Below are positions 2,020-30,519 of a stretch of DNA of 64,000 bases, piece after piece; position 1 is the first letter of the stretch, and every line of letters begins with the position of its first letter. The stretch is from Marsupella aquatica (taxonomy: Eukaryota; Plantae; Marchantiophyta). The notes under the pieces are model-generated. The model made no database searches and had not been told where the DNA came from. It saw only the letters and a program-made list of their open reading frames with translations. The position numbers and the translations under genes are program-made. The stretch is from assembly GCA_973895155.1 (NCBI GenBank), contig OZ316898.1, positions 19,169,292 through 19,233,291 of the forward strand. The letters are read 5' to 3'.

Positions 2020-5000
2020 GGATGTCAGAGGATTTTCAGGTGGAATAGGAGACAGTGGTGCACTCACAGAAGGGCTTGCAGGTGGATTAGGAGACAATGG
2101 TGCACTCACAAAAGTAGACTCAATATATGGATGATTGAGAGTGGGTTCATCTATTTAAGTTGTCAAGACCAAAGGGTACTAAATCAGGAGAGACATGTTC
2201 AACTGTAGGGTTGGGACTATAATCATATATTAAGAATAGTAGAGATGGATGGTGGTTGGGTTGGAAGAATCACCAATGATTATGCAGGTGGGGAGGATGA
2301 TTGTAGAAACTGGGTGTTTGAGGTTGAAATCAAACATCCTCAACTCATAAAACATAACATCTCTAGTACTGATGTAAATTTTTCTCTTGATGGGACCGTA
2401 GTATTTATAGGCCTTGGATTTTTCATCATAGCCTACTAACAAGGTACGAATGGACTTCAGTTGGTTGACAGTTTGTGTCTCAACTCATTGGGAACATGGA
2501 CGTAGGCTAGGCACCCAATAATACGAAGGCGAGATAAATCAGGCTTGACATTGTATAATTGCTGGAATAGTGTAGAAAAGACTAGAGATGAAGTTTCACA
2601 CCTGTTGAGCACATAGTTGGTTGTCTGGATGAGAACTTTCTCGTATAAGTTTGTCCCACAAAAAAGTAGGAGCTCCACTTCCAATCTGCATGCTCTGTGC
2701 TGCTTCCGACAATGTATGCTTTTTTTTGTTCGGCAACTCCGTTTTGTTGAGGAGTCCTGGCTGCTGTGAGTTGATGCTTAATGCAGAATTCATTTGACAA
2801 ATATTCCCCTCCTTGATCTGATTGAACACATAGAATTTTGTTGTTGTATTCATTTTCAATTATAGGTTTGAAGTTTTTGACCTTCAAGAAAGTTTCACTT
2901 TTGGCCTTCAAGAAATATACCCAGGTGAAGCAAGAGAAATCACTATCTAGAGCAAAATACTCTTGCTAGATAGTGATGAAACAATAATGGTCCACAAAGA
3001 TCTGTGTGTGTATTAGTTGCAATGGCTTGCTTGACCAGTTGGTGGATTTCTAGCTTTGGGATGCGCTCCCTTTGCTACTTCCGCATGATGCACGTATCAC
3101 ATACATGCTCCTCAAATGGGAGATTAGGCAGACCTTTAGCCAATCCCTTGGATAACATGTGTATTCGGTGCGGGATTCGGTGGAAGTTAACATGAGTGAG
3201 CCTGCGGTGCCACGTACAGTACCAGTGGAGAAATGATACTTTGTGTTTCATCGTCAATGTTGCTTGTAGATAGGCTGCTTGGAGAGCCATGCTGAGTACT
3301 AATAACTTGCTTGTCAGCACTATCAACCAATGTGAAATGTACTTTCAAGCATAGTTTGGCATTGCCCTGGAGAGATGTGTCAAAGATGATACTTGTAAAC
3401 TATTGTGCTTATCCCTGGTTGCCCTCAAAAAAATCTTGTTGGGGTCTTCTTTATTCAGAACATAGCAATGTCAAGAATTAAATAGCACATTATGGCCTTC
3501 ATCAGTCAGCTGGCCAACTGATAATAGATTGCGACTCATACTAGGCACATACAAAACTTTGTTAACCACTTTATTTCCACTCAATTTTGTGGTGTCTCTG
3601 CCAGCAATGGGAATGCGTGCACCAGAGGCTGTAGTTACATTGGAGGGTGAAGCATATGGCACTATACAGCTATTTAAGAGTACTCCTATTGCCAATCACA
3701 TGTGTACTGGTACCTGAGTCAACTAGCCAATCATGACTAGCTTTGAATTTTGTGAGGTTTTATTACCTCTAAAGTACGATTGTCAGGATCATCGTCAGAC
3801 TCACACTCTTCAGGCTCTAGAGTTTCCACTACGTTTGCATGGTGCATACCCTTCTTGATGTCAGCATGCTTCATTTGTAGACCCTTGATCTGGCTCTCGA
3901 TCTCCTTCAGGCATTCTCCTTCCTAATGACCAGAGAACCCACAAAAGTTGCATGCTTCTTGCTGTTTGAGACTAGAGGAAGGTGTGCTCCTTCCCCGTCC
4001 ACGAAAGCTATTCCTGCCTTTGCCATCATGTCCACAGAATGGGCTGCCATGATTGCTACTATGGCTTGTCATCAACGCTTCTTCATTGTCCTTGCTCTGC
4101 AGAGTACTTCCATTTCTTCTGCCTCAAGGTGACCAATAAGATAAGAGAAAGACAGAGTTGGGAAATGATGCAGCAAAGTGCCGAAGGAAATAATAAATGG
4201 TTTCCAGCTCTTTGGCAATCCCTTGAGAGTAGTGCGGATGAGCTCTTTGTCCTAGATGACAAAATTAATGTTGGCAAGCTGCATCACCAGGTTGTCAATC
4301 TCCCAAATATATTCCTCTACACTGCGTCCTTCAGACATTTACATCCTCGACAGCTTGTCCTTGAGAATAAGTTGTTTGCCCAGGGCTGCAGATTTGAATT
4401 GGGCTTTCAACTGCAACCATATCTTGGCAGGATTGTTGATGTATTTCTTTATGATGTGAAAAATGTGATCCTTGTCTGTTTGCAAAAAAATATAGATTGC
4501 CCTCTCGTTCTCTTCGATTTGCTCTGGTGTGAGCTGCAATGGCTTGGTCGGGTTAGGGCTGACCAGCTCAAACCGAACCTTGTCCTTGTGGAACTGGCAG
4601 GCCACTTTGAACGCCCACCCAATGAAGCTCTTGCTGCCATCGAACTTATCCTTGCCTGAGTAGACGAGGCCTTTGTCAATGTAGTAGTGGACATTCTGTG
4701 GTACAGGAGGTCCACTGCTCTGCAATGTCTGCTGTGAGCTATTGCTTGGCGATGCCGTGTGACATTCGCTGTGGGCCGCCAACCATCCTGCTCAATACCT
4801 GAGTGGAAATGGGAGATTCTCACCAACAATATGCATTGGCAGGCCGGCTCTGATACCATGAAATTTGATAAGCTTACTTGGTGAATAAATAATGTACAGA
4901 AGGGAGAGCCCTTAAGAGTAAGCTAAGGATGGAACAACCGCACAGCCATAAGCATGGGAATAATCTGACAGTAACAATGAATCAGTCCTAAATCTAATGA

Positions 5001-7096: not shown

Positions 7097-8033
7097 ATGG
7101 GGAGGCATCCATATAGTGAGACCCCCGAGATCTCAGTAGCCATATCACAATGAGCAGCGTCATGACTACAACCAAGGTGGATGTGGTCGTGGCCGTGGCA
7201 GATCCAATCGGTGGGCACCCAGGCATGCTGCACCGAGGGCGTTCTATGACAAGCGAGATACAACATGCAACTACTGCAGGAAGAAGGGACACTGGGAACC
7301 CGACTGCTTTGAGAAGCAAGCCCATGACAAAATGAAGTCGATGTCCCCCACCCAGATGCGGGAGCTGACCCAGAGTATCAAGGACATCAAAGGTCTCGGA
7401 CCTAAGGCTTACCTTGCTACTCATGGCAACCGTGGAGACAACGACATTCAGAAGAACTGTGCCCCTGGTGAACATCAGTCTGCACTCATTGTCGAGGCAA
7501 TGTTGAGTGAGTTTGATAGCGGTCGTCCCGAAAGTAACACTTGGATTCTGGATAGTGGAGCCTCCACTCACATTAGCCGCGACAAGAGTAACTTCACTAC
7601 ACTTAGTGATAGCCCGTCTACTTCCAATGTGCTGAGCGCCAACGGATCTAAGATGCCAATCTCTGGGTCCGGATGTATCCCAATTTCAAGCAATAAAGCT
7701 ATTTCTGATGTTTTGTACGTGCCGAGTATTACCCGAAACCTTCTCTCAATTGGTAAACTCACTGACCAAGGCCATTCTGTCATCTTCAACTCCTCAAATT
7801 GCTACGTTCTAGACAGACTATGCTCGCATAAAATTAGGCTAAAGGGGACTCGCGATCCCTACAGCAAGTTGTATAAAGTTCAACTCCCGTCTGCCACGAC
7901 CAATCCGGGGACCAATCACAATGTCCTACACACTGTCGCTGAGCAACGCCAAATGATTCTTCATCCTAAGGTAGCAACTCAATGCCACCTCACCGAATCT
8001 CGACTCTCTGACCAACAGCTTTGGCATCAGCGT

Positions 8034-9130
8034 TGTCGTGATTTTCTCTTAAGTTATAAAAAATTGTTTGTTTTAATATGCTATAGATTATATAAGTAAT
8101 TTAGTAGTTAGATTATTAAATTTAGACTTTATTAAACTTCTTTAGCTATATTAACGGACTATAGTAGTTCCACCAACTACAATAATATTCACCAACGCAT
8201 AGTAGGTCCACCAATGCATAGTAGGTCCACCAATGCATAATAGGTCCACCAACACATAATAGTTCCACCAACGCATGGTAGTTCCACCTACTAAAAGTAG
8301 TTTCACCAACTATGAACAGTACTAGCACACTCTTAGGTATTAGATGTTTGACACTTGGCCTTCATCCAAGTGCTTGGGCTTGATCAATGCCCTCTTGGTG
8401 TGCACTATAAATAAAGTGGTGAGGGGCACTCTCCCCTCATTCCGCAGTGTTTATCATTCAAGGTTGTGAAGCTCTTTTGTGCCTTGAACATAGTAGTGGG
8501 CGTCCTTTGGCCCGGATAGCAAAGGAATGAGTGGTAGTCTTATAGATGGGACCTTAGGGAATAAGGTTTCTTTGGGAATATAGGGGTGGGGCATCCTTTG
8601 GCCCGGATAGCAAAGGAATAGGAGAGCCATCATGAATCTAGGAGAGAGAGTTATCCTTGATCTTCCCCTTCGTAATATGTTTTTGATTAGAGTCCATCTT
8701 TTAGACAAACCATCTATGAGGCAACATCTAACCTATCATTTTGGAGCTCAGTTTGCAACTGCTGTTATGGTTTCTAACGATCCAATAATATACCCAGTGG
8801 TGTCGTACCGAGAGGAGTGGGAGTGCATAATCTTTGTTCTTTATTGAAGTCATGGATCTGAATTAGAGTCCGGATGATATCCCTGTTTCATTTTTTCTTG
8901 GAGATATTAGGATCATATGTCGTAAGAAAACTAATTTTCATGATGTGTTGGTCCGCAAGTATGATGAAGTAGGGTTTAACAGTATTTTAGTTTCACCTGA
9001 ACCTTTCTTAATACCCACTACCCTTGTTACTAGAATTATCATTTTGATTTTAGTGTAGAACTTATAAGCATGCAAGGTTAACTTCAAAAGAGCCAACATG
9101 CTCTTGCCAGAAAACACGGTCACCCGGACA
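8034..9130. mobile_element. Solo LTR (~1.1 kb) of another LTR retrotransposon nested in the copia
   Basis: TGTC...GACA termini and GCGT duplication (8030-8033 and 9131-9134). It splits WHQR|LGH and contains a TATA-like CTATAAATA and 21-bp internal tandem repeats. Confidence 0.8.
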
Positions 9131-16090: not shown

Positions 16091-16750
16091 CTATGCTGAA
16101 CAGCAGCCAACTTTTTTCAATGCGGTGACATCGTCCTTGTTTCCAACGCTAATAGTTGTACCTGCCCCTACCCCAGCCCCATTAGATGGATCCTCGCCAA
16201 CATCAAGCGCCTTCTTACTCACCACACTGTAAATCTGAGTCAGAATCTGTTTAAAGGCATTTTCCACATTGGTCGCCACGAGAGCAGAGGTTTCCATAAA
16301 GAAAAGGCCCTCTCTCTCTGAGAATGACTGGCCATCCTCTGTAGACACCGCTCTCAAGTGGCGCAAATCTGATTTGTTCCCGACGAGCATGACCACGATG
16401 TTCGCGTCCGTGTGGTCCTTGAGCTCTTTCAGCCATCTTTCAATGTTCTCGAAGGTGCCGTGTCTTGTGATATCATAGACTAACAGCGCGCCCATGGCTC
16501 CACGATAGTACGCACTCGTGATAGCTCTGTACCTTTCCTGGCCTGCCGTGTCCCATATCTGCGCCTTGATGAGCTTGCTTTCCACATTGATGCTCCGGGT
16601 CGCGAACTCCACACCGATGGTGGACTTCGATTCCAAACTAAACTCATTGCGCGTAAACCTTGCGAGAATGTTGGATTTGCCAACACCGGAGTCTCCGATC
16701 AGAACAACCTTGAATAGATAATCGTAATCGTCCTCTGATCTGTACGCCAT
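16091..16750 (-). CDS. RAB11: Rab11/RabA small GTPase (intronless CDS, 219 aa)
   Basis: [48 protein letters not shown] and a C-terminal GCCSA prenylation motif. Confidence 0.97.
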
Positions 16751-18965: not shown

Positions 18966-20054
18966 TATTCAATTGATAAGAGAGTTGATTTCCAATTTGT
19001 GTCAAGTATTTGTGTGCTAAAGGCTTTGTATTGTGAACCCCACTATGGAATGGGGTTTCTAAGAGTCATCTACTTTTGAAGCTTAAACCCATAACCTTAG
19101 TTGTCAAAATAAAACCTTTTATTGCTGGGCCATGTTTACAGGGATGATAATTTTATCTAGTCGGACTAGTAACCTCTGCACTTTTTAAATCCAAGAGTAT
19201 GTAATATTGTACTTCCAATTGTAAAATCTTATACCTCATGTTTTCATTTTGTGTGGTTGACAACAATGGGGTCTCAAGCCTCAGGATTTAATGGACCTTA
19301 ACTTAGTAGTTTAAAGCTAAGATAGAAAAAGTTATGAACTATAATACTCATCATCCATAACTTTTTGCCATTAAGATTGGTCAGATGTCATAAGTCACTG
19401 TAGAGAGGATATTGGAAAAAACTTATTTTAAATAACCCTATGAAAAACCATATGGCCAAAAGCTGACTTTGAGACACCCTCATAAACGAATTTCACTCGT
19501 CCAGAACCCCATCTACAGTGGATAGGTGCCCCATGTATAAGTGCATTCCATGGGTACCTGCAGGTGGGTCATGTAGTCCCCTCATAATACAACATTATTC
19601 TTTGTAAATGCACCCAAAAATGCACAATTTGTAATGTGCAGCTCATTTTTGTCTATTAGAGTGCACATGCATTAATCAATTATTGCACCACATATGCTTG
19701 GACAACTACACATGGTAGTTTCATGCACTTATCCAGTTGAATCGTGCAGTACAAGGATTCCAGGTATAAGGAGTCCCATGCAAATGACCTGACAAAACAC
19801 TTGCAGCAGTGCATAAGTGGTTTCACATGCACTTATTGGAAAGTGCAACATGCACATATCATGATGCCCATGTACTTATGGCATCTCAGTGTTACTTGGC
19901 AAATGTACAGAAGCTACAATTGTGATCAAGACTTCTAGAGTGAAACCTCTAGACCGTAACTCTAGGGTCGCACCAAATGTATGTGGATGGAGAGAATGGG
20001 ATGTATCGTATGTCAAGCTGATGATGCATGATTATTTTTGTCACCATCTCTAAT

Positions 20055-20725
20055 GTCATTCAAAGAATGGGCATTGATGCTCATAGTGCATAACGTAGAT
20101 AAGTGCAGGCTTGGGTTGTCTTCCCGGGACCCTGCCCTGCTTATTTTTGTCATCATCTCTACTATAATTCAAAGAATGAGCATTCACGCTCACAGTGCAT
20201 AAAGTGGATAAGTGCAGGCTTGGGTTGTCGTCCTGGGAACTTGCACTTAGACAAGGTAGATTGTACTTAGACAAGGTGCACTTAGACAAGGTAAATTTAG
20301 CTCATAGTGCATAGCATGGATAAGTGCAGGCTTGGGTGGTCTTCCCAGGAACCTGCACTTAGACAAGGTAGACTGTACTTAGACAAGGTAAATTGTAGCT
20401 CATTGTGCATAACATAGATAAGTGCAGGCTTGAGTGGTCTTCCCGGGAACCTGCGCTTAGACAAGGTAGACTGTACTTAGACAAGGTGCACTTAGACAAG
20501 GTAAACTGTAGCTCATGGTGCATAATGTGGATGAGTGCAGGCTTGGGTTCCCTGAATCTGCACTGCTTATTTTTGTCATAATCTCTACTGTCATTCAAAG
20601 AATGGGCATTCACACTCATAGTGCATAAAGTGGATAAGTGCAGGCTTGGGTTGTCTTCCCAGGAACCTGCACTTAGACAAGGTGGACTGTAGTTAGAGGT
20701 GCCCTTAGACAAGGTAGACTGTAGC
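20055..20725. repeat. Composite tandem repeat (CTTAGACAAGGT and GATAAGTGCAGGCTTGGG modules)
   Basis: About 6 long modules and more than 10 short modules are visible. Confidence 0.9.
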
Positions 20726-21386
20726 GTAATGTCAAGAGTTTTTGAAGTTCAGACTTTTATCCTCGTGTTTGGGACTGAGAGAATCTACCTGTGTGAGTAT
20801 TGAGTAGGCCCGGGAGTGGGCTTTGCGGCAAAAGCTGCGTAATTCTCTGCTCACGGGCGTCATGATGCCTCCATGTTTGGTCCACTTCCCGAAAGCCAGA
20901 GGTTCCGGTGGTCGTCTTTCAGTTGCTTTGCTTTACGCTTTGCCTGAAATGCCTGAAATGCCTGAACAGTCATCAAAACGGAAAGTGGGGAAGGAAGGAA
21001 TGGATTGAGCGTTGAATATTTTGAGCTTCGGATCATAGATGCCATCGGTCTGCACTGACCTTTTACAGGTGGAAAGGAGATGCACATGTCTGCAGAAAAT
21101 GGGGAAAGCGGGTCTTCATTGCGAGTGGAACGCAGATGATATCGGTCTTTCGTGTTCTTTTTCAGCTGGAACAGGATTTGTGCATGTGTTCAGCTGGAAC
21201 AGGCTTAGCGATGGCTTCAGGTGATGATTTCTTGTGGTGAAACAGGGAAAGAGTTCCTGAAGTTCTCCACCGACTGTGTGGGGAGGCAGAGAGTGACAGA
21301 GTCAGGGTACATTCCCTTCTGGAGAAGAAACACGGAGATATACGAGATTGGGGTTCGAGGCATTCGAGAGGAAGAGAGAATTGGAG

Positions 21387-24300
21387 ATGGCTGATCACCA
21401 CCAGTATACAGGGCCTCCAGGGGGCCCTATCTCGGTACCTCCCTGGGCTCCTCCTCCTCGTCCTCCTCCTCTGAAAGCCCCTCCACCTTCGCCTGCTCGT
21501 CTTCCTCCTCTTGCTCCTCCTCCTCCGCCGTTGCAGATCCATCAACCGCAACACCTCATGCATCCGCCTCCTCCTTTTCCCCCCTTTCTTCCAGGCCATC
21601 CTGGCAATCCAGGTTTTCATGGCACTCCAGGTTTTGTACATGGATTTGTGCCGCAGCAGCAGCAGCAACATCATTACTACAATGTGGGTCCTCATGCTTT
21701 CCCCTTTCATAGCCCCCCTCCCAACCAAAGCTCGTTTGGATCTCCTCCTCTTCCTTTCCCTCCTCCACCGCCTCAAAGGGCACCACCTCAAATGGGTCCG
21801 GGAATGGTTTCTTCGATTCAAAGTTCGGACTTAGGAGCTGCCCATTTTAGGGGCAGCGATGCTGCTCAATTCGGGCAGTACAACAGAACTTCTCCACTCG
21901 GAATTGCAAGAATCGAGAATTTAGGGTTCAGCAAAGAGGAGGAGGGGGTCGTTGTGATTGAGAAGGCTATAGAGCAAACCCAAAAGGAGAAAACAGTCGA
22001 CGTAACGGAGCTTTTATCTCAGATTCGTGCTCTTGTCGGTCAAGCTGAGGAGGCTGTACAAAAGGTTGGAAAGTTGGGCATGTTGGAGCCCTCAATTGCA
22101 GGACCTCATTTAGTGACATGCCCTCATAACCCCACTCATCGAGTCTCTCCAAAGGTCCTGTTCAAACACTTTCTTTGCTGCCCTTCAAGCCCTAAACCCA
22201 AGTTGGACGCTCAGAAGCTCATCTCCTCTCTCCAATACCCCCACTGGCAAGATCACGACGAAGACACTGGACCTGAGAAGGACGATCACAAACCCGTAGA
22301 ATTGCAATCTATTACCTTAGACGCCGGGAGAGACCCGAAGTCTTCAGTTCCATTCAGTGAAAACTTGACGGAAGGTGAGGTTCAAGTGGACAAAGGAAAT
22401 GTGAAAGATCAGATTCTAGTTTCAGGACCTGGAAAAGGCGAATCAAGGAAAGCTGCTGTTGGCAGTGACGTCGATATATGGGGAGGCGGTTTCTTCTACA
22501 AGGATTCCCCTGCGGTTGTTCAGGCACCATTACCAACACCTTATCCGGCGACAGAAATGTCCGATCAATTGGGTGCAAAATTGGAAAGCAAAAATGCAAC
22601 TTCGGAAGGGATCGGCAGTCTCGTTAAGAGGGGAATGTGTGGAGATGGTTTAGGGCAGCTTCTTCCCTCAAGATTCTGGTTGTTACTGAGAGAGATAGAG
22701 GCGTGGAAAGAATTCCCTACTCGGTGTTCCACTTTGGCTCTCCAGGCAGCAGCAGGAGTAAGGAGGATTCGGAGAAAAGTGGTCTCGGAGTGGGTACTCA
22801 TGCAAGCTCCCGCCCATGGGGTGGTAATTGATTCAGCCATGGCGAGCCACATCCATACTCTGGCCAGAATCTGCTTGAAATCTCTGCAAACGGAAGCATC
22901 CACTCTGATTGACCATCCCTGTTACTTTTCAATTAGTAGAGGTAGTCCCCCATCGCCTGGAAAAGACACCTCCCAAAAGTTTGATCTTGCAGAGAGATGT
23001 GGAACGGACGATGAGTTATCCATTGCGCAGGACGCTAGCGGTCTTATAAAAGTGAAGGAAGAACCAGCTCTAGTCATAGGCGATGTAGGTCGAAGTTTGA
23101 AGGTGTCTCTTCTTGATTGCCCTCATCTATTTCAAAGTGGGCACTGGCTCGCTTCTCAACTGTCCTCCCTGTTTGGCCCTTTACAGAGCAAGGCGTTAGT
23201 TTTGAAGTTGTTTAAGCACTGTCTTGTTATGTGTGGACGAAATTTGGCTTCCTCCTTTATAGGCCCCTTCAGGAAGCAGGCAACTGAAGACCCTGTGCAC
23301 TTGAGTAGATGTCTTCCAAATCAGGATGGGGATGTGAAGCCATCAACGGACTTGCAGATTCACCAAGACGCAAGGCAGATTCATAGTGAGTTTGTGAAAT
23401 CAATGGATGAAGCAGTGGACGGACGTGCTCTTCCATTGTGGGTGGAAACGGCCATTGCTGCTGTACGTGAACGGGCAGTTTTAGAGAGCTACTTGAGAGC
23501 CCTGACATATCCCAGCATAGCGGCAAAATTTCAAATGTGAGTATGAACCAACTGATGTCTATAGTCTAAATTTCAGACATCGAATTGCAGCGCCGGGTAC
23601 TTTGTGTGACTATGAGACCATTACGGGACAGATTATCCTGAGTTTTGGTAGGAAAGAACTCAATGCTAGGAATCAAGAGGATAAATTGTATGGGCTTAAA
23701 CCATCAGACATCAAGATTAGATTTGTGATGCTCTTGCCTCTCTCTTGCATGCTGCGGTTCTTCACAGGATCCAAGAGCATGAAGCCACAGTGACGATGGC
23801 TGCAGCAGAACGACGTAATCGAGAGAACTATAGAGCAGTTGTGGAGCATGATGGCCTGATTTGGCACCGATCTCAATTAGAGGTATGTGATCTTCGTTTC
23901 TCGACATCTGTTGTTAATGATCGGCACGGAAGAAATCTCGCAGTCGCTCCTAATTTCTGCATAACAAGTTGCTGCACAAAATGTTACGTAAAGTTTTTAC
24001 TCCACAGGAGTCCGGATGGCGTTTGGACTTTTTGGACAAATTATAGCTCAAAATTGCGTAAGAGGATTCATGTTGATATTTCGCACAGGAGAAAAACAAG
24101 AACAAATCCAGAGAAGAAATATTGGCTGAGGAGCGAGACTACAAGAGACGGCGCATGTCGTACAGAGGGAAAAGACTGAAACGGAATCCCACGGAGGTAG
24201 GCATCCTTTATGATAGATCCACAGTTAGAACCTCAATGCAAATGGCTGACGGCGGGCAGAACATAGGCTAGGAAACTCTACTTTTGTCGATAACTCCTCA

Positions 24301-25126
24301 CTAGTAGAAGCGGCGCTTACCGGCTTCATGGCAGTACTATTGAATAGGGTTTATAAAGGAAATCTTGAATTTCAGATCCTTTTGGTGGATTAATTTATTA
24401 TTAATTCCTGTTCATATATCTTGCTCCTTTTTATACTATGGTGGATCTGTACCTCCGCTGTTGACATGTTCTTGACTATTTATTTGCTTTGTGCAGGTAC
24501 TCCGTGATTTAATTGGAGGGCACATGGAAGAGATTGTTGAGGCTGGGGGTATTGGTTGTCTCTTGAAGCACACAGGTGGGGTAGCACTGTCAGCTCAGGC
24601 TGGTGGGGACAGCTCCCAACTCCAAAACCCTCTGAACCCACCTGACGCTGAAGCTCCTCCTTCTTCCCTCAGAAGTGATCCAGTGAATGTCAATGCAATG
24701 GACAAGAGAGGCAACTGGAATGGTCCTCCTAGGAGCCGACCGGGCAGTCGAGATCGTCACTCCAGTGAACAGATTAGGTCCAGAACTGCTGAACTATCTG
24801 TCATTGACCCTGGTGCTGGTTCTCAAGACAACAAAGGTTCGGATGATGACAAAGAAAGCAAGTACAGAAGTGATGCTTTACGTGGGAAATTCAACAAACA
24901 CAACTCTCACCACGGTTCTTATGCAAGTAGGGATAACCAGAGTGCTCATTCCAGATCCGAGAGAGATGATGGAAATGACTCCAAAAGTTCTTGGGGGGAT
25001 AGCAGTGCGGACCATAGTACGAAAAACTTTGGAAGGGATCGGAGCCGTAGTCAAAGATATAGTGAGAGTCGGGAAGGTTCAAATGAGGGCGATGGCTATG
25101 AGAGGCGACAAAGTACAGAGTATTAG
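21387..25126 (+). CDS. SNRNP48: U11/U12 small nuclear ribonucleoprotein 48 kDa protein (~1000 aa)
   Basis: Exons 21387-23536, 23768-23882, 24089-24196 and 24497-25126, all GT-AG and phase-consistent (3003 nt). CHHC Zn finger CPHNPTHRVSPKVLFKHFLCC, conserved LAEERDYKRRRMSYRGK and VLRDLI, Pro-rich N-terminus, RS/RD-rich C-terminus. Confidence 0.92.
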
Positions 25127-25627
25127 GGGAAGTCCAGGAGTAGCCACTTAGAACAGCTGCCATCTTAGCAATGTCTCAACTCGCGGGTGGTGTTACATTT
25201 TTCAAAGCTACTTTCACGTATCGTACATTCGCTTGGGAAGGTGATGACAGTGGTAGGAAGGATTTGAACTCATGAAGAAAGTTGGATGGCGTTCATGCAG
25301 TGATCCAACGTTCAGTTAAGGTGGGGTTTCTTTTGAAACTAAGTGAACCCTTTTCCCTAAATATGGAACGAATCTGTTCTCATCTCACCAACTCCTGTCT
25401 ACAATGCTTCCTTTCTTTTCTTGGAAATTACATTTTTCTAAGTAGTCTTGCTTTTGTTTTTCTTTTCTGTTTCGTTGCTGTTGATTACAAGCACCTGTGC
25501 TCAATTCGGCATTAGTGCGGAATCAGTGACTTCCTTATCACTTCTTACCAAATTCTCATTTGTTACCATTCAGTTGGCTGCAGCAGTATTTGCCCTTCTC
25601 TGGAGATTTCCAACAATGCGTTGTTTT

Positions 25628-25647
25628 GTATCCTTGTCCATATCCTT
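25628..25647 (+). promoter_or_regulatory. Tandem U12-type 5' splice-site motifs (USSE-like element) in the SNRNP48 3' UTR
   Basis: GTATCCTT-gtcc-ATATCCTT, two perfect RTATCCTT matches, 54 nt downstream of a polypyrimidine/CAG acceptor (25571-25573). Confidence 0.8.
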
Positions 25648-27205
25648 CCCGCTTTCCTCAAAGAGGAAGATAATGTAGCAGTTTTGACGAAGCACGTTTC
25701 TTTGCTCTTGCTTGCTGCATTTGAACCCCCAATTAGTTATGGAACAATTAGGACGGGTGGAAATTTTGACCACAATTTTGACTTGCATGTGTGATTTATT
25801 TTCCAATGTCTTTATAAATTGTTGTGTTTGAAATCACAGTTTTCTAGGACTAAAGATATATGAGAACTAGAGTACTCTGTGCATGTTCCATCGTCCCAGT
25901 CATTCCCGATCTGCACGTGGGATGATATGGAACCTTTGCCTTCACATTTTGACTCGCATATGATCTAACGATGACCATGACGTCTAGGGAGAAAAACTGT
26001 GGGCTGCAGATGTTTTTTACTTTCGGGCAAAAGTGGAGACGTGTAGTGGATAGCACTAACATTTGCAGGGCTCAATTTCATTCAGAAAACTTGGAGCTAA
26101 CGAGTCAATTTGGGCGACAGTAAGATTGCTGCAGGGTAATGCTATGTGATAGATGTCTTGGAGCTTTGAAGCTGTTGTTGTTTAGCAGTAACATATAACA
26201 AGGAAAAATTGATCCTGTGGCGAAGAACGGAATGTTCTGACATGTTGGGATGTAGCATTCTTTGCGTCCCATTCAGCTTGAATATGTATGGGTTCAGAAT
26301 TCACGGTAACTGTGGGTCCGGCTTTTAAAGTTCACGAGAATGAGTTATTATTTATTTAGAGAATCCATTTTTTCTTGGTTGAATCAACAAGAGAGTTGTT
26401 GATGCAATTGTTAGAGAATTGTTTGTTTTGAACATTTACCTTGTATAATCTCCTGCTTATTCGGGTTAAGTTGACTACAGATATGTTTCCAGGCGGAGGA
26501 AATGTGGGCTAACAAGTGCTCTCGAGCCAATCTGTTCTTCGTTTGTGTTTCTGTTTCCCTGTAAAGTAGCTTTCAATAAACTTTAGCAAGCTCCAATCCT
26601 ATGCTATTTGTGTGTAGTCTGAGCCTTATCCGTTAGAAAATGAAGTTTTGTTACCTTCGAATTGAATTGCAGATGAATCTCGATAGTTGCCTTCGAACAA
26701 GAACTGCAGTTACATATAACAAATCAATGTACATAATCGTCCCCTCAATACATATCTCTGTCAGCGAAATGTACAAAATGACAGCAGGCCCAAGAGTAGT
26801 CTGCGTAGGACTTGTTTAAGTACATAATTATCAGCTTACTGGTACAAATTCTTCTTATGGTCTACAGCAATGAGTTTCTCAAATTTCGGACCTGGAAACT
26901 ATCAACCTATTGCCTGTTCGAGCTGGAAACAAAGACCATGCAGAAATCCAGCATGATTGTTTCCTTGCAGTGCACTCCCTGTTCCAAACTTTGGGGTGCC
27001 CAATTGTTCCGAATCTTGGCAGATTCTACGGTGACAAGCTGGTTTGGCAAAATTATCAAGTAGAAACACACTCAATTCATACATGTTATAGAAGCAATGA
27101 TGTTAGTGAAACTTACACACGAACCACTTGAAACAGCTTCAAAGTCCATGGCCAAATGTCGCCATTGGTACACTAGGGAAGAGAACCGATCAGTAAGTAT
27201 AGTAC

Positions 27206-29487
27206 CTGGAGACGAGCTGTTAAACGCATTAAACCAGTACACCTTCGAAGCTGAGAACGGAAATATGCCACAACGTGCCCCATTTCCCAGGAGCTGAAGG
27301 CCAGAAATACCAAAATCGTGTCCCTCGGAGTACTCTGCAACTCCACGAATTCCAATTTGCCCAACAAAGCGAGCCGGTGGGAACCCCATCCATTTTGCTA
27401 CCACTGAATTTGCCCCATCACAACCCACCAAGACCTGCATACAATGTTCTCAAAGTAGGACATTAATGCTTAAGCCTCATACAACAATTCTTAGTCTACG
27501 TGTACACAGTACGAGCTCTCCTTCCCCAAAAGCCTTGCATTGACAATTCCTTCTTACATCATTCATACTCCGCTTCAGAAAAAAGAGTATTGAGGAAAAT
27601 TTAGGAATGAAAATCAGCCATCCAACTCAGAGTGGTCCCGCTTATTCGTAATATGACCTTAACACAATTTTAGCTAAGGTTTGCCTTCCCAAAGTTACAA
27701 GAGTTGTGCACATGTGATGTACTGCTGAGCCATAATGTTCAAGGAAAGATTGTCAAATAAGACAAGCGTAGCTCTCCCTCTATTACACACCTTGGTGGAT
27801 ATGACGGACCCATCCTCAAGTTCCACCTTCGTCAACCCGTCTCCGGCTTCCTTACTAATGGCACACACTCTTGAATTGAGCTGCAGTGTCCCTGGTGGCA
27901 GGGTTTAGAGAGCTTCCACTAAGGCTTTGCGCTCTACTCCGCGTACCTCATGTGGCCTGCGAGAGAATCGGTGGAATGAGGCAGCGCCATTGAGCTCCAG
28001 TCATACAACCCATTGTTTCTCTTCGAACTGGACGTACTATCTGTTGGTCCCGATTGTCAATCTCAGTCTCACAATACTTGAGTTGGTTCCTTCAGTTAGC
28101 TCTGCTCTGCTCTGAATAACTATCTCCCTTTGCTCATTCCGTAGCACTAACTCAATTGATTCTCATATCCAGGACTAGAATACAGTTTACCACAGCCGTT
28201 TGCTTCACAACCGGAGCGAAAAAGTATCATCAGATGTAGAGGAAGGTTGCAGGTTGTGAAAGTTACCTACCCTCCTGCACACTCCCTGAATTTAAGTTTT
28301 GTTAGCAATTTTTTTCCAGAACGGTCGTACAAGTCCATCCTGCACGCATCCAGTATCCAAGTCTGACAATCAATGGTCAAGACTTACACAACAGTCAAAG
28401 AGGTTCTAACCCAGATACCCAATTGTCCCAAAAACTCGCAAACCAGCCGCATCTCTCAATCAGCTATAGAAGGTTTGATGCTCACAGTCAGTAGGTCAAA
28501 CAAGAGACAAAACTATAGTCATAGCTCACTCGGTACAAATTCAAGGCGAAGCAGTCTCCCCTGTTCCTAGATTGGATTGAATGAGATGTCTTTAACGTCG
28601 CCTAAGGTAAAATCATGCCCGAATTGAAAGGAACTCAGACGGCACAGGTCCTCAAACTAGGGAAGAATTGGGTCTCTTACTCATCAACTTGTACGTGGGT
28701 TTCTCGGAGGACATCGGCAACCCCCAAATAGTCTAGAGCCCGCCAAGCATTCCCCCAGAGAAACAGAGAGGCACCTGAGGCTCTGATGGATGGAGCTCGT
28801 TCCAGCACAAGAACCTTGACCCCAACCCTGCGCTCAAATCATCAACGAAACACAGGTGACACAATTTCCAGGTGAACAAATTCCACATCGGCCTTGACAC
28901 GATCTGTACCAATGCACGCAATATGCCAGATTATTCCTCTCCAGTAACGGCGAGTTTCCTCGCTAATTTGAATTGAGTTCACAATTCAAGGATCCCCTGT
29001 GGTCCAAGACTGTGTTCTACGACATTCAATTCAACAGAATTAACCCAAGTGTGCAGAAATCGTCCAATTTCTATTAATTGTTCCCCTGCCTCAGTGGAAA
29101 TGGAGCTTCTAGCCAGTATGGCCGCAGAATCAGTACCGACCTGTGAAGAGCAACGGCAGCAGAAAGACCTGCAATGCCACCACCCACGACGACAACCGTG
29201 TGAACCAAATTTTCAGCCTCAGCGCTTTCCACTTGAGGAGCTTCCACATCAGAAACTGTCTGGCTCCTCGCCACCGCGACTCCATGCCTCCGTCTCCTGA
29301 CCATTCTGCGTGAGAATCCTTCCTGAGCCTGAGTCACCGCATGTGCACTCGACGAAAGACTTCCTATTGCACTAAGCATATTGAATGTCGCGTGCACTGG
29401 TGATCCGCTTACATTCCGATCGTGTGGCACAGCCAGATCACAATGCAAGACTGCCGACGCCAGGGACGTCGTCGTCAGGGCGGCCAT
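27206..29487 (-). CDS. FAD-dependent monooxygenase (CTF2/monooxygenase-2-like, probable plastid transit peptide), apparently 3'-truncated
   Basis: Exons 29487-29141, 28827-28681, 28339-28271, 27956-27791 and 27434-27206 are phase-consistent. Motifs VVVGGGIAGL, WGNAWRAL, EVRGVERKAL and VGCDGANS (DG motif). No downstream exon with the GD(A)xHP motif was found. Confidence 0.85.
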
Positions 29488-30519
29488 GGTGGACACGACT
29501 ATCCAGAGGCGACAACAACAACGTTGTGCAATGTAACAGAGCTTATTGTAAGAAGATTTGCCTGAGCTGACCCTGAAATGATGCCAACCAGTGCTGTCCA
29601 AAGCTAAATGTACACCGTAAAAACTGCGTACTACAGTTTTTGTGAATTTCTCAGTAGATGAGCAGGGTCACCTGTCAGCTCCAATTGTTCCAGAACTGCT
29701 AAGCTTGAAGCAAGACTTTTCGTGACCACACTGGGTATATCTATAATTGAGTGAGTTGGTACTTTTATGCAATTTTGGTACAAGCCCTCTAGATCTCCCG
29801 AAGCCAACGGTAAATTGAAGTGAGCTGGTAAGCTTTTGGATACGTGTTGATTTCGAGCTCTGAAACATGGTAATGGGGATGTGTTTCATCGCTTCACATT
29901 GGCCATTGAAATAATGGACCCCGTGAGGTTCCCTTCGCCGGATCAGCCGTGAATACAACAGTACTCTTCTCTCTTCTCTGGTCATTTTTCTCGTTTTGGA
30001 TTTGTAGAGGAAAGAAACCCTCTGTTGAAAGCTCTGTTCAGGTCGCAGTGTCTTCTTCAAAACAAATTCTCATCATCTACAGTGCACCAGCAATCGGGAT
30101 GGACGCAAACAGGCTTCAAATTCTCTATCCAGAATGACTGGTGCTGTTTGTTGTGATGGCTGTGGCCCATTTCACGTGCATAGCACAGGCATGGCGTGCT
30201 GATTCATTCTATTGGAGACGTATTCCCCACTCATGATCACAGATCTTTCTGGTACAAGCGTCGTGTACATCTCAAGCTTCGTCATTCAGACAGTGTCGTT
30301 TGCGAAAGGGAAATGTTGCCAACTAAGAGGAGCATAATCCTTCATGACAGATTTTTCTGGTGAAGTTGTCATTTGCATCTCCAGCTTCGCACAACGAATC
30401 ATTCAGGTAGTGTCATTTTTGGAAGGAAATTAGTGGTGCCAAGGGGCGCGAATCCGGTTGAAATTACCATGACTCACCACTGTTTCCTACGAGGCATGCA
30501 ATGCGCAGGCAGCATATGA

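Follow-up and report, generated by a model that had tools for sequence, protein, structure and literature searches.

The U11 small nuclear ribonucleoprotein (snRNP)-binding splicing enhancer (USSE) is a tandem of U12-type 5′ splice sites that is not itself spliced and that activates an upstream U2-type 3′ splice site in the genes for the 48K and 65K proteins (PMC5473595, PMC3584512, PMC8329584). Only SNRNP48 and RNPC3 are known to contain such elements (PMC6865273), and the feedback that they exert on 48K is a conserved feature shared by plants and animals (PMC3584512, a review citing Verbeeren 2010). Here we describe a candidate element of this kind in the liverwort Marsupella aquatica. The DNA analysed, referred to as the window, is a stretch of 64,000 nucleotides (nt) of the forward strand (GenBank assembly GCA_973895155.1, contig OZ316898.1, positions 19,169,292 to 19,233,291), and all coordinates are positions within it unless another sequence is named. 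The element is a pair of U12-type 5′ splice-site motifs in the 3′ untranslated region (UTR) of SNRNP48, the gene for U11-48K, and we consider it quite likely that this pair is a USSE-type, U11-binding feedback switch.

A tandem pair of U12-type 5′ splice-site motifs past the SNRNP48 stop codon

The two motifs lie on the plus strand, copy 1 being GTATCCTT at 25628..25635 and copy 2 being ATATCCTT at 25640..25647. They form a mixed GT/AT pair, 12 nt from start to start, and the first begins 502 nt past the SNRNP48 stop codon. The original prediction, made from the sequence of the window, had placed two RTATCCTT motifs at these positions, about 500 nt beyond the stop, and in this it was correct. 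It had also listed a weak third site, GCTTTCCT, but the conservation of this site ends at the closest relative and it is not counted here.

The octamer RTATCCTT occurs six times on both strands of the window, where about 3.8 to 5 occurrences would be expected by chance. The two copies in the SNRNP48 3′ UTR are the only ones on the plus strand. Same-strand pairs no more than 30 nt apart are expected about 0.005 times per window, and 300 order-3 Markov simulations produced none.

Orthologous loci or mRNAs were gathered via protein searches, and ten sequences with DNA were compared. All ten carry the pair at the 12-nt pitch, 3′ of the conserved 48K coding region. In Calypogeia, it reads GTATCCTT-GTCC-ATATCCTT and starts 507 nt past the stop codon; in Marchantia (569 nt past the stop) and in Riccia (within the annotated coding sequence), it reads GTATCCTT-GTCT-GTATCCTC. 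The mosses have GTATCCTT-GTCC-GTATCCTC (Physcomitrium, 579 nt past the stop) and GTATCCTT-GTCT-GTATCCTT (Sphagnum, 150 nt), while GTATCCTT-GTCA-GTATCCTT is found 194 nt past the stop in a set of plant mRNAs (L026-L029, runs SRR326171xx). The angiosperm Amborella carries GTATCCTC-CCAT-GTATCCTT, 231 nt past the stop, and a plant contig from ENA (L033) has GTATCCTT at 7248 and GTATCCTC at 7260. When the SNRNP48 3′ UTRs of bryophytes and vascular plants are aligned, the tandem pair is therefore seen to be kept from liverworts to Amborella. The invariant columns of an eight-species alignment are the two RTATCCT cores, plus one isolated upstream column, and the flanks of the pair are unalignable beyond the class level.

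The core of copy 1 is invariant in all orthologs, and so is the TATCCT core of copy 2. Copy 2 begins with A in the window and in Calypogeia, whereas its position +1 is G in the other lineages, where the motif reads GTATCCTY. A change between G and A next to a fixed TATCCT fits selection for recognition by U11/48K, which takes both /AT and /GT, and not selection for a U1/U2-type GT donor.

The plant mRNA set L026-L029 has a peculiarity of its own. Between 194 and 385 nt past the stop, these mRNAs carry two more single copies of GTATCCTT besides the pair, which sit in a direct repeat of about 80 nt (GCATGCC.AACT.C.TTGCTTCTGTATCCTTGAAAA), so that each UTR contains four mimics of a U12-type 5′ splice site.

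Layout of the 3′ UTR and its host gene

The alignment of the window with the Calypogeia locus began at the end of exon 1 and reached past the gene, and identity was determined for each segment. Upstream of the pair is a pyrimidine tract with three CAG acceptors (25541..25586, plus strand, 87% identity to Calypogeia). The CAGs at 25571-73, 25581-83 and 25584-86 lie 54, 44 and 41 nt before copy 1; the tract ending in CAG 54 nt ahead of the pair, and the alternative CAGs after it, are thus located as originally proposed. The spacer from the acceptor cluster to the pair (25587..25627, plus strand) is 78% identical, rising to 90% in 25600-25639. Over the whole of 25560-25640, the identity is 85-90%, and over the tandem pair it is 100%. 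Further upstream, the region 25321-25540 is only 52% identical, with indels, as compared to 54-70% for the confirmed introns of the gene. This step in identity at the pyrimidine tract and CAG cluster matches the boundary expected between an intron and a terminal exon, and supports a 3′ UTR acceptor 41-54 nt upstream of the pair. A U2-type acceptor and a conserved intervening sequence are present upstream of the pair, which is a statement on sequence presence and not on usage.

A similar footprint was found between Marchantia and Riccia, in which the sole island of conservation (62-82% on a background of 30-50%) extends from the acceptor TTTTACAG|G (10448 of the Marchantia locus, L002) to the final base of copy 2. 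This agrees with the published observation that the sequence between the target 3′ splice site and the USSE is conserved throughout (PMC8329584). Pyrimidine-CAG sites lie upstream of the pair at 33 nt in Marchantia, at 31 and 42 nt in Riccia and at 31 nt in Amborella.

The candidate alternatively spliced 3′ UTR intron would occupy 25321..25573 on the plus strand, from the donor AAG|GTGGGG to the CAG at 25571-73 (alternative ends 25583 and 25586), with both boundaries predicted from the sequence. It contains 42% T and 15% G, against 30-35% T in the three confirmed SNRNP48 introns; together with its intron-level identity to Calypogeia, this bears out the description of the DNA after 25321 as T-rich and intron-like. 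The proximal 3′ UTR before it (25127..25320, plus strand) has an exon-like base composition and 66% identity to Calypogeia. Within the candidate intron, sequencing runs X3 and X4, from a related strain or species that differs by about 1-3%, lack the 13 nt at 25346-25358; compared with Calypogeia and Marchantia, the window carries additional sequence at this same spot.

As for the donor, the original prediction of AAG|GTGGGG, with its GT at 25321-22, holds in part. The sequence is present and homologous donors are found nearby in Marchantia (CCGAG|GTTGGTATCATG) and Riccia (CTGAAG|GTAGGTCATG), the latter being used in the gene model KAL2652873, but the position itself is not conserved in Calypogeia. 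A weaker alternative, TAA|GTAGTC, is present at 25442. A donor is likely to lie within the neighbourhood of 30 nt that includes 25321 and the homologous sites of the relatives; 25321 appears to be the best candidate in the window, and a plausible one, although its exact position is not fixed.

Downstream of the pair, the distal 3′ UTR (25648..26190, plus strand), probably the body of the terminal exon, is 68-85% identical to Calypogeia. Beyond about 26190 the identity drops abruptly to 20-45%, and because of this collapse the transcript is likely to end near 26190-26200, well past the pair. The conservation of the distal 3′ UTR equals or exceeds that of coding exon 4 (75%) and is much higher than that of the introns. 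Additional regulatory elements may lie in this segment, such as the poly(A) or U1-type sites found in animal 65K, or the conservation may simply mark the transcript end.

The host gene, judged from its sequence, is the U11-48K/SNRNP48 ortholog in a leafy-liverwort relative of Calypogeia. It has four coding exons on the plus strand, and all three coding introns are GT-AG. Exon 1 (21387..23536), an open reading frame ending at the donor aat|GTGAGT, encodes a proline-rich N-terminus, a CHHC zinc finger and a conserved central domain. The frame runs on in exon 2 (23768..23882; IQEHEATV...HRSQLE), matching the proteins of relatives, and in exon 3 (24089..24196; EKNKNK...RDYKRRRMSYRGKRLKRNPTE), which aligns with human SNRNP48 residues ~200-240 by profile. 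These two exons show 90% and 94% nucleotide identity, respectively, to Calypogeia. Exon 4 (24497..25126, 75% identity to Calypogeia) follows the acceptor tgtgcag|GTA and ends with the stop codon TAG at 25124-26.

The exons were searched separately and not as the joined four-exon protein. The product of exon 1 is 63% identical to the Calypogeia fissa protein and 33% identical to a Marchantia protein, the closest named relative, which NCBI calls U11/U12 snRNP 48 kDa. Its CHHC finger has the spacing C258-x5-H264-x9-H274-x3-C278, and the motif RDYKRRRMSYRGK...TEV|LRDLIGGHMEE is divided between exons 3 and 4. A profile of liverwort proteins matched human SNRNP48 (8r7n_F, from the cryo-electron microscopy structure of the U11 snRNP) with E=8.9e-12, and this match spans both the finger and the RDYKRRRxSYR...TEV.RD.I..HMEE motif. 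The Pfam family zf-U11-48K, searched with the separate exons, gave E=0.22, below threshold, a PDB search with a single sequence gave no match, and the last coding exon, used by itself as a protein query, found no matches. Pfam alone being unconvincing, the identification as SNRNP48, which upholds the original assignment, is made because of the profile match to the human protein and the homology to the Marchantia 48 kDa protein.

The upstream neighbour of SNRNP48 is a Ras/Rab-type small GTPase gene (16091-16750, minus strand; Pfam Ras, E=2.5e-63), and downstream is a FAD-dependent oxidoreductase gene, recognized by a weak match (about 27070-30060, minus strand). The Calypogeia locus is flanked by the same two genes in identical order and orientation. 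Just 5′ of the SNRNP48 promoter region, at 20032-20510, lie tandem repeats whose units measure about 98-112 nt, each in about two copies with 87-93% matches. The donor of intron 3 is GAG|GTAGGCATCCTT both in the window (24197-24212) and in Calypogeia (8938-8950 of L001), combining a U2-type GT with a U12-like ATCCTT tail, and intron 3 of Marchantia has an internal GTATTTCC-ATATCCTT instead (9140-9155 of L002). This U12-like tail may have arisen by chance, or it may be a remnant of minor-spliceosome involvement at that intron.

Proposed switch, transcript evidence and alternative explanations

We infer U11 binding, splice-site use in this species, decay or retention of the mRNA, and feedback as follows. 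The RTATCCTT copies would serve as binding sites for U11 small nuclear RNA (snRNA) and U11-48K, and not as true intron starts. They would probably be occupied by two U11/U12 di-snRNPs, with 48K contacting the 5′ splice-site mimic; the 12-nt pitch, fixed across land plants, and the spacer, which reads GTCY in the liverworts and mosses, support the idea of two such particles binding side by side. When U11 snRNP is abundant, its presence on the pair would promote exon definition towards the U2-type acceptors 41-54 nt upstream (25573, 25583 or 25586), and activation of an acceptor would lead to removal of a 3′ UTR intron starting about 195 nt past the stop, at 25321 or at a nearby GT. In plants, an exon junction in the 3′ UTR more than 50 nt past the stop codon marks an mRNA for nonsense-mediated mRNA decay (NMD). 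The spliced mRNA would have such a junction and would be an NMD substrate. U11 left bound could also retain the mRNA in the nucleus, as in the animal 65K and 48K long isoforms, the nuclear retention of which needs U11 binding to the USSE (PMC5473595). Higher levels of U11/48K would thereby yield less productive 48K mRNA, a negative feedback on the minor spliceosome. The identity of the gene as SNRNP48, the strict conservation of the pair and the step in conservation at the acceptor cluster all speak for the USSE-type reading of this 3′ UTR element that the original prediction had put forward.

Transcripts of the moss Physcomitrium were examined by mapping 19 public RNA-assembly contigs, from many independent runs, to its genome. 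The four coding introns are spliced in all contigs. In the 3′ UTR there is a 113-nt GT-AG intron (8906-9018 of the Physcomitrium locus, L015), 274 nt past the stop. Five contigs have it spliced out and two retain it, while another ten end precisely at its donor, as would be expected of an assembly bubble. All contigs that reach the pair are unspliced across it and extend about 440-610 nt further. An alternative 3′ UTR intron upstream of an unspliced pair fits the USSE model. The mRNAs from the SRR326171xx runs likewise read through all four copies of GTATCCTT. The Physcomitrium 48K mRNAs also vary in their 5′ UTR, where some join 4399 to 4878 of L015 (a 5′ UTR intron) and others are collinear (4370-4399 region).

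Several observations, however, weigh against a USSE-type switch working as outlined above. For M. aquatica itself, all four public runs that contain the locus are DNA, their contigs being continuous across the coding introns (21000-26600). In Calypogeia, the closest relative, the donor GT at 25321 is replaced by GA, and a strong AAA|GTAAGT follows 20 nt further on, at a place where the window has CTAAGT. In Physcomitrium, 191 nt separate the alternative acceptor from the pair downstream of it, and the 70 nt closest to the pair contain no good acceptor, indicating that the short-distance geometry of exon definition is not universal. Moreover, the gene models of Marchantia (OAE35042) and Riccia (KAL2652873) both let an intron begin precisely with copy 2 (/GTATCCTC). 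Should RNA support these models, the property of never being spliced would fail in Marchantiopsida.

The last point leads to the explanation that copy 2, or both copies, could be a real splice donor, with regulation by actual splicing through a short "poison" cassette exon or through an intron starting at the pair. Both of these independent models have a short exon (10449-10545 of L002 in Marchantia; 7282-7336 of L030 in Riccia) that starts at the conserved acceptor upstream and whose last base directly precedes copy 2, and the conservation island of the two species stops exactly at copy 2. However, because the extended C-terminal reading frames of the models are not conserved, the short exons are probably UTR splice isoforms that were annotated as coding. 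A genuine U12 intron from the pair was also considered and found improbable: a scan of the loci of seven species, downstream of the pair, gave no match to the U12 branch-site consensus TTCCTTAAC within one mismatch. As copy 2 starts with AT in the window and in Calypogeia, U2-type donor use is excluded there, and no matching branch-point sequence or AC end was found; in Marchantiopsida, weak U2-type use of /GTATCC is possible. The mRNAs of the moss and of the SRR326171xx set also read through all copies. On balance, real donor use appears unlikely to us. A more specific version, which we offer tentatively and with considerable doubt, is that copy 2 (/GTATCCTC) is the real 5′ splice site of a conserved poison cassette exon of about 55-100 nt in Marchantiopsida, and that a change of G to A at +1 made it a decoy for U11 alone in the lineage of Jungermanniopsida to which the window belongs. 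If true, this would give a natural series of evolutionary stages linking real splice sites with their mimics, and would show how USSEs arise from, or decay into, real minor or major sites.

The pair might also bind U11 but work mainly without splicing, by nuclear retention or by interference with cleavage and polyadenylation, with the upstream intron being unrelated. The processed mRNA that is abundant in moss carries the pair in both the spliced and the unspliced forms of the 3′ UTR, and the moss acceptor is distant from it. Also consistent with this idea are the requirement for U11 on the USSE in retention of the animal 65K and 48K long isoforms and the long conserved distal UTR after the pair in the window. 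Yet a pyrimidine tract and CAG 31-54 nt upstream, followed by conserved intervening sequence, recur in four liverworts and in Amborella, and an acceptor with such a conserved stretch is the published signature of 3′ splice-site activation (PMC8329584). We consider a mainly non-splicing function to be quite improbable, although splicing and non-splicing modes are not mutually exclusive and can coexist. That the pair is a chance or neutral duplication without function is almost certainly wrong. Single RTATCCTT octamers are indeed expected several times per window, but tandem pairs are not, and the identical arrangement is kept from liverworts to an angiosperm amid unalignable flanks, so that this notion is effectively refuted. 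An Rfam scan of the window was empty, with no U11 gene.

Comparison with known feedback systems

Most likely, the liverwort element is the bryophyte form of the published plant 48K USSE and not a new kind of element. As with the plant U11-48K USSE (Verbeeren 2010; Niemela et al. 2015; summarized in PMC3584512), its host gene belongs to the 48K family, its tandem pair lies in non-coding DNA beyond the coding sequence, and a U2-type acceptor precedes the pair; what sets the window apart is its leafy-liverwort origin and the mix of GT and AT in the pair. What is added here is the presence of the pair and its exact geometry across bryophytes, the comparative footprint of the acceptor and the transcript support from a moss. 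These extend the homeostatic switch of the minor spliceosome to liverworts and mosses, while the understanding of its mechanism is unchanged. As both Marchantia and Physcomitrium are amenable to genetics, with NMD mutants at hand, they could provide a simple system for studying exon definition across the two spliceosomes outside animals.

With respect to spacing, Niemela et al. 2015 reportedly placed the USSE 25-50 nt from its target 3′ splice site in animals and plants. The acceptors at 25583 and 25586 (44 and 41 nt) and the sites in Marchantia, Riccia and Amborella fall within this range; 25573 (54 nt) is borderline, and the acceptor seen in moss RNA is outside it.

Among the animal systems, the USSE of RNPC3, the U11/U12-65K gene, shares with the liverwort element its 3′ UTR location and the activation of an upstream 3′ splice site inside the UTR. 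The USSE-containing long-UTR isoform of animal RNPC3 is unproductive via nuclear retention (PMC5473595). It differs in the gene concerned (65K), in being a case of cross-regulation instead of autoregulation, and in the additional competition of the animal switch with two other signals, a proximal poly(A) site and a U1 site that is conserved. The animal SNRNP48 USSE has in common with the present one the orthologous gene, the tandem of U12-type 5′ splice sites and the logic of negative feedback. However, it is intronic, and its poison cassette exon inserts a premature stop that leads to NMD, whereas the liverwort pair lies beyond the natural stop, where decay would need a 3′ UTR junction or a long UTR. 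In its layout, the plant element therefore resembles that of animal 65K (3′ UTR) more closely than that of animal 48K (intronic poison exon). More generally, the U1-70K/U1C and SR protein circuits are also based on a splicing factor that binds its own pre-mRNA to give an unproductive isoform; by analogy, the sensor in the SNRNP48 3′ UTR would be an snRNP that base-pairs with splice-site mimics, and not an enhancer-binding protein.

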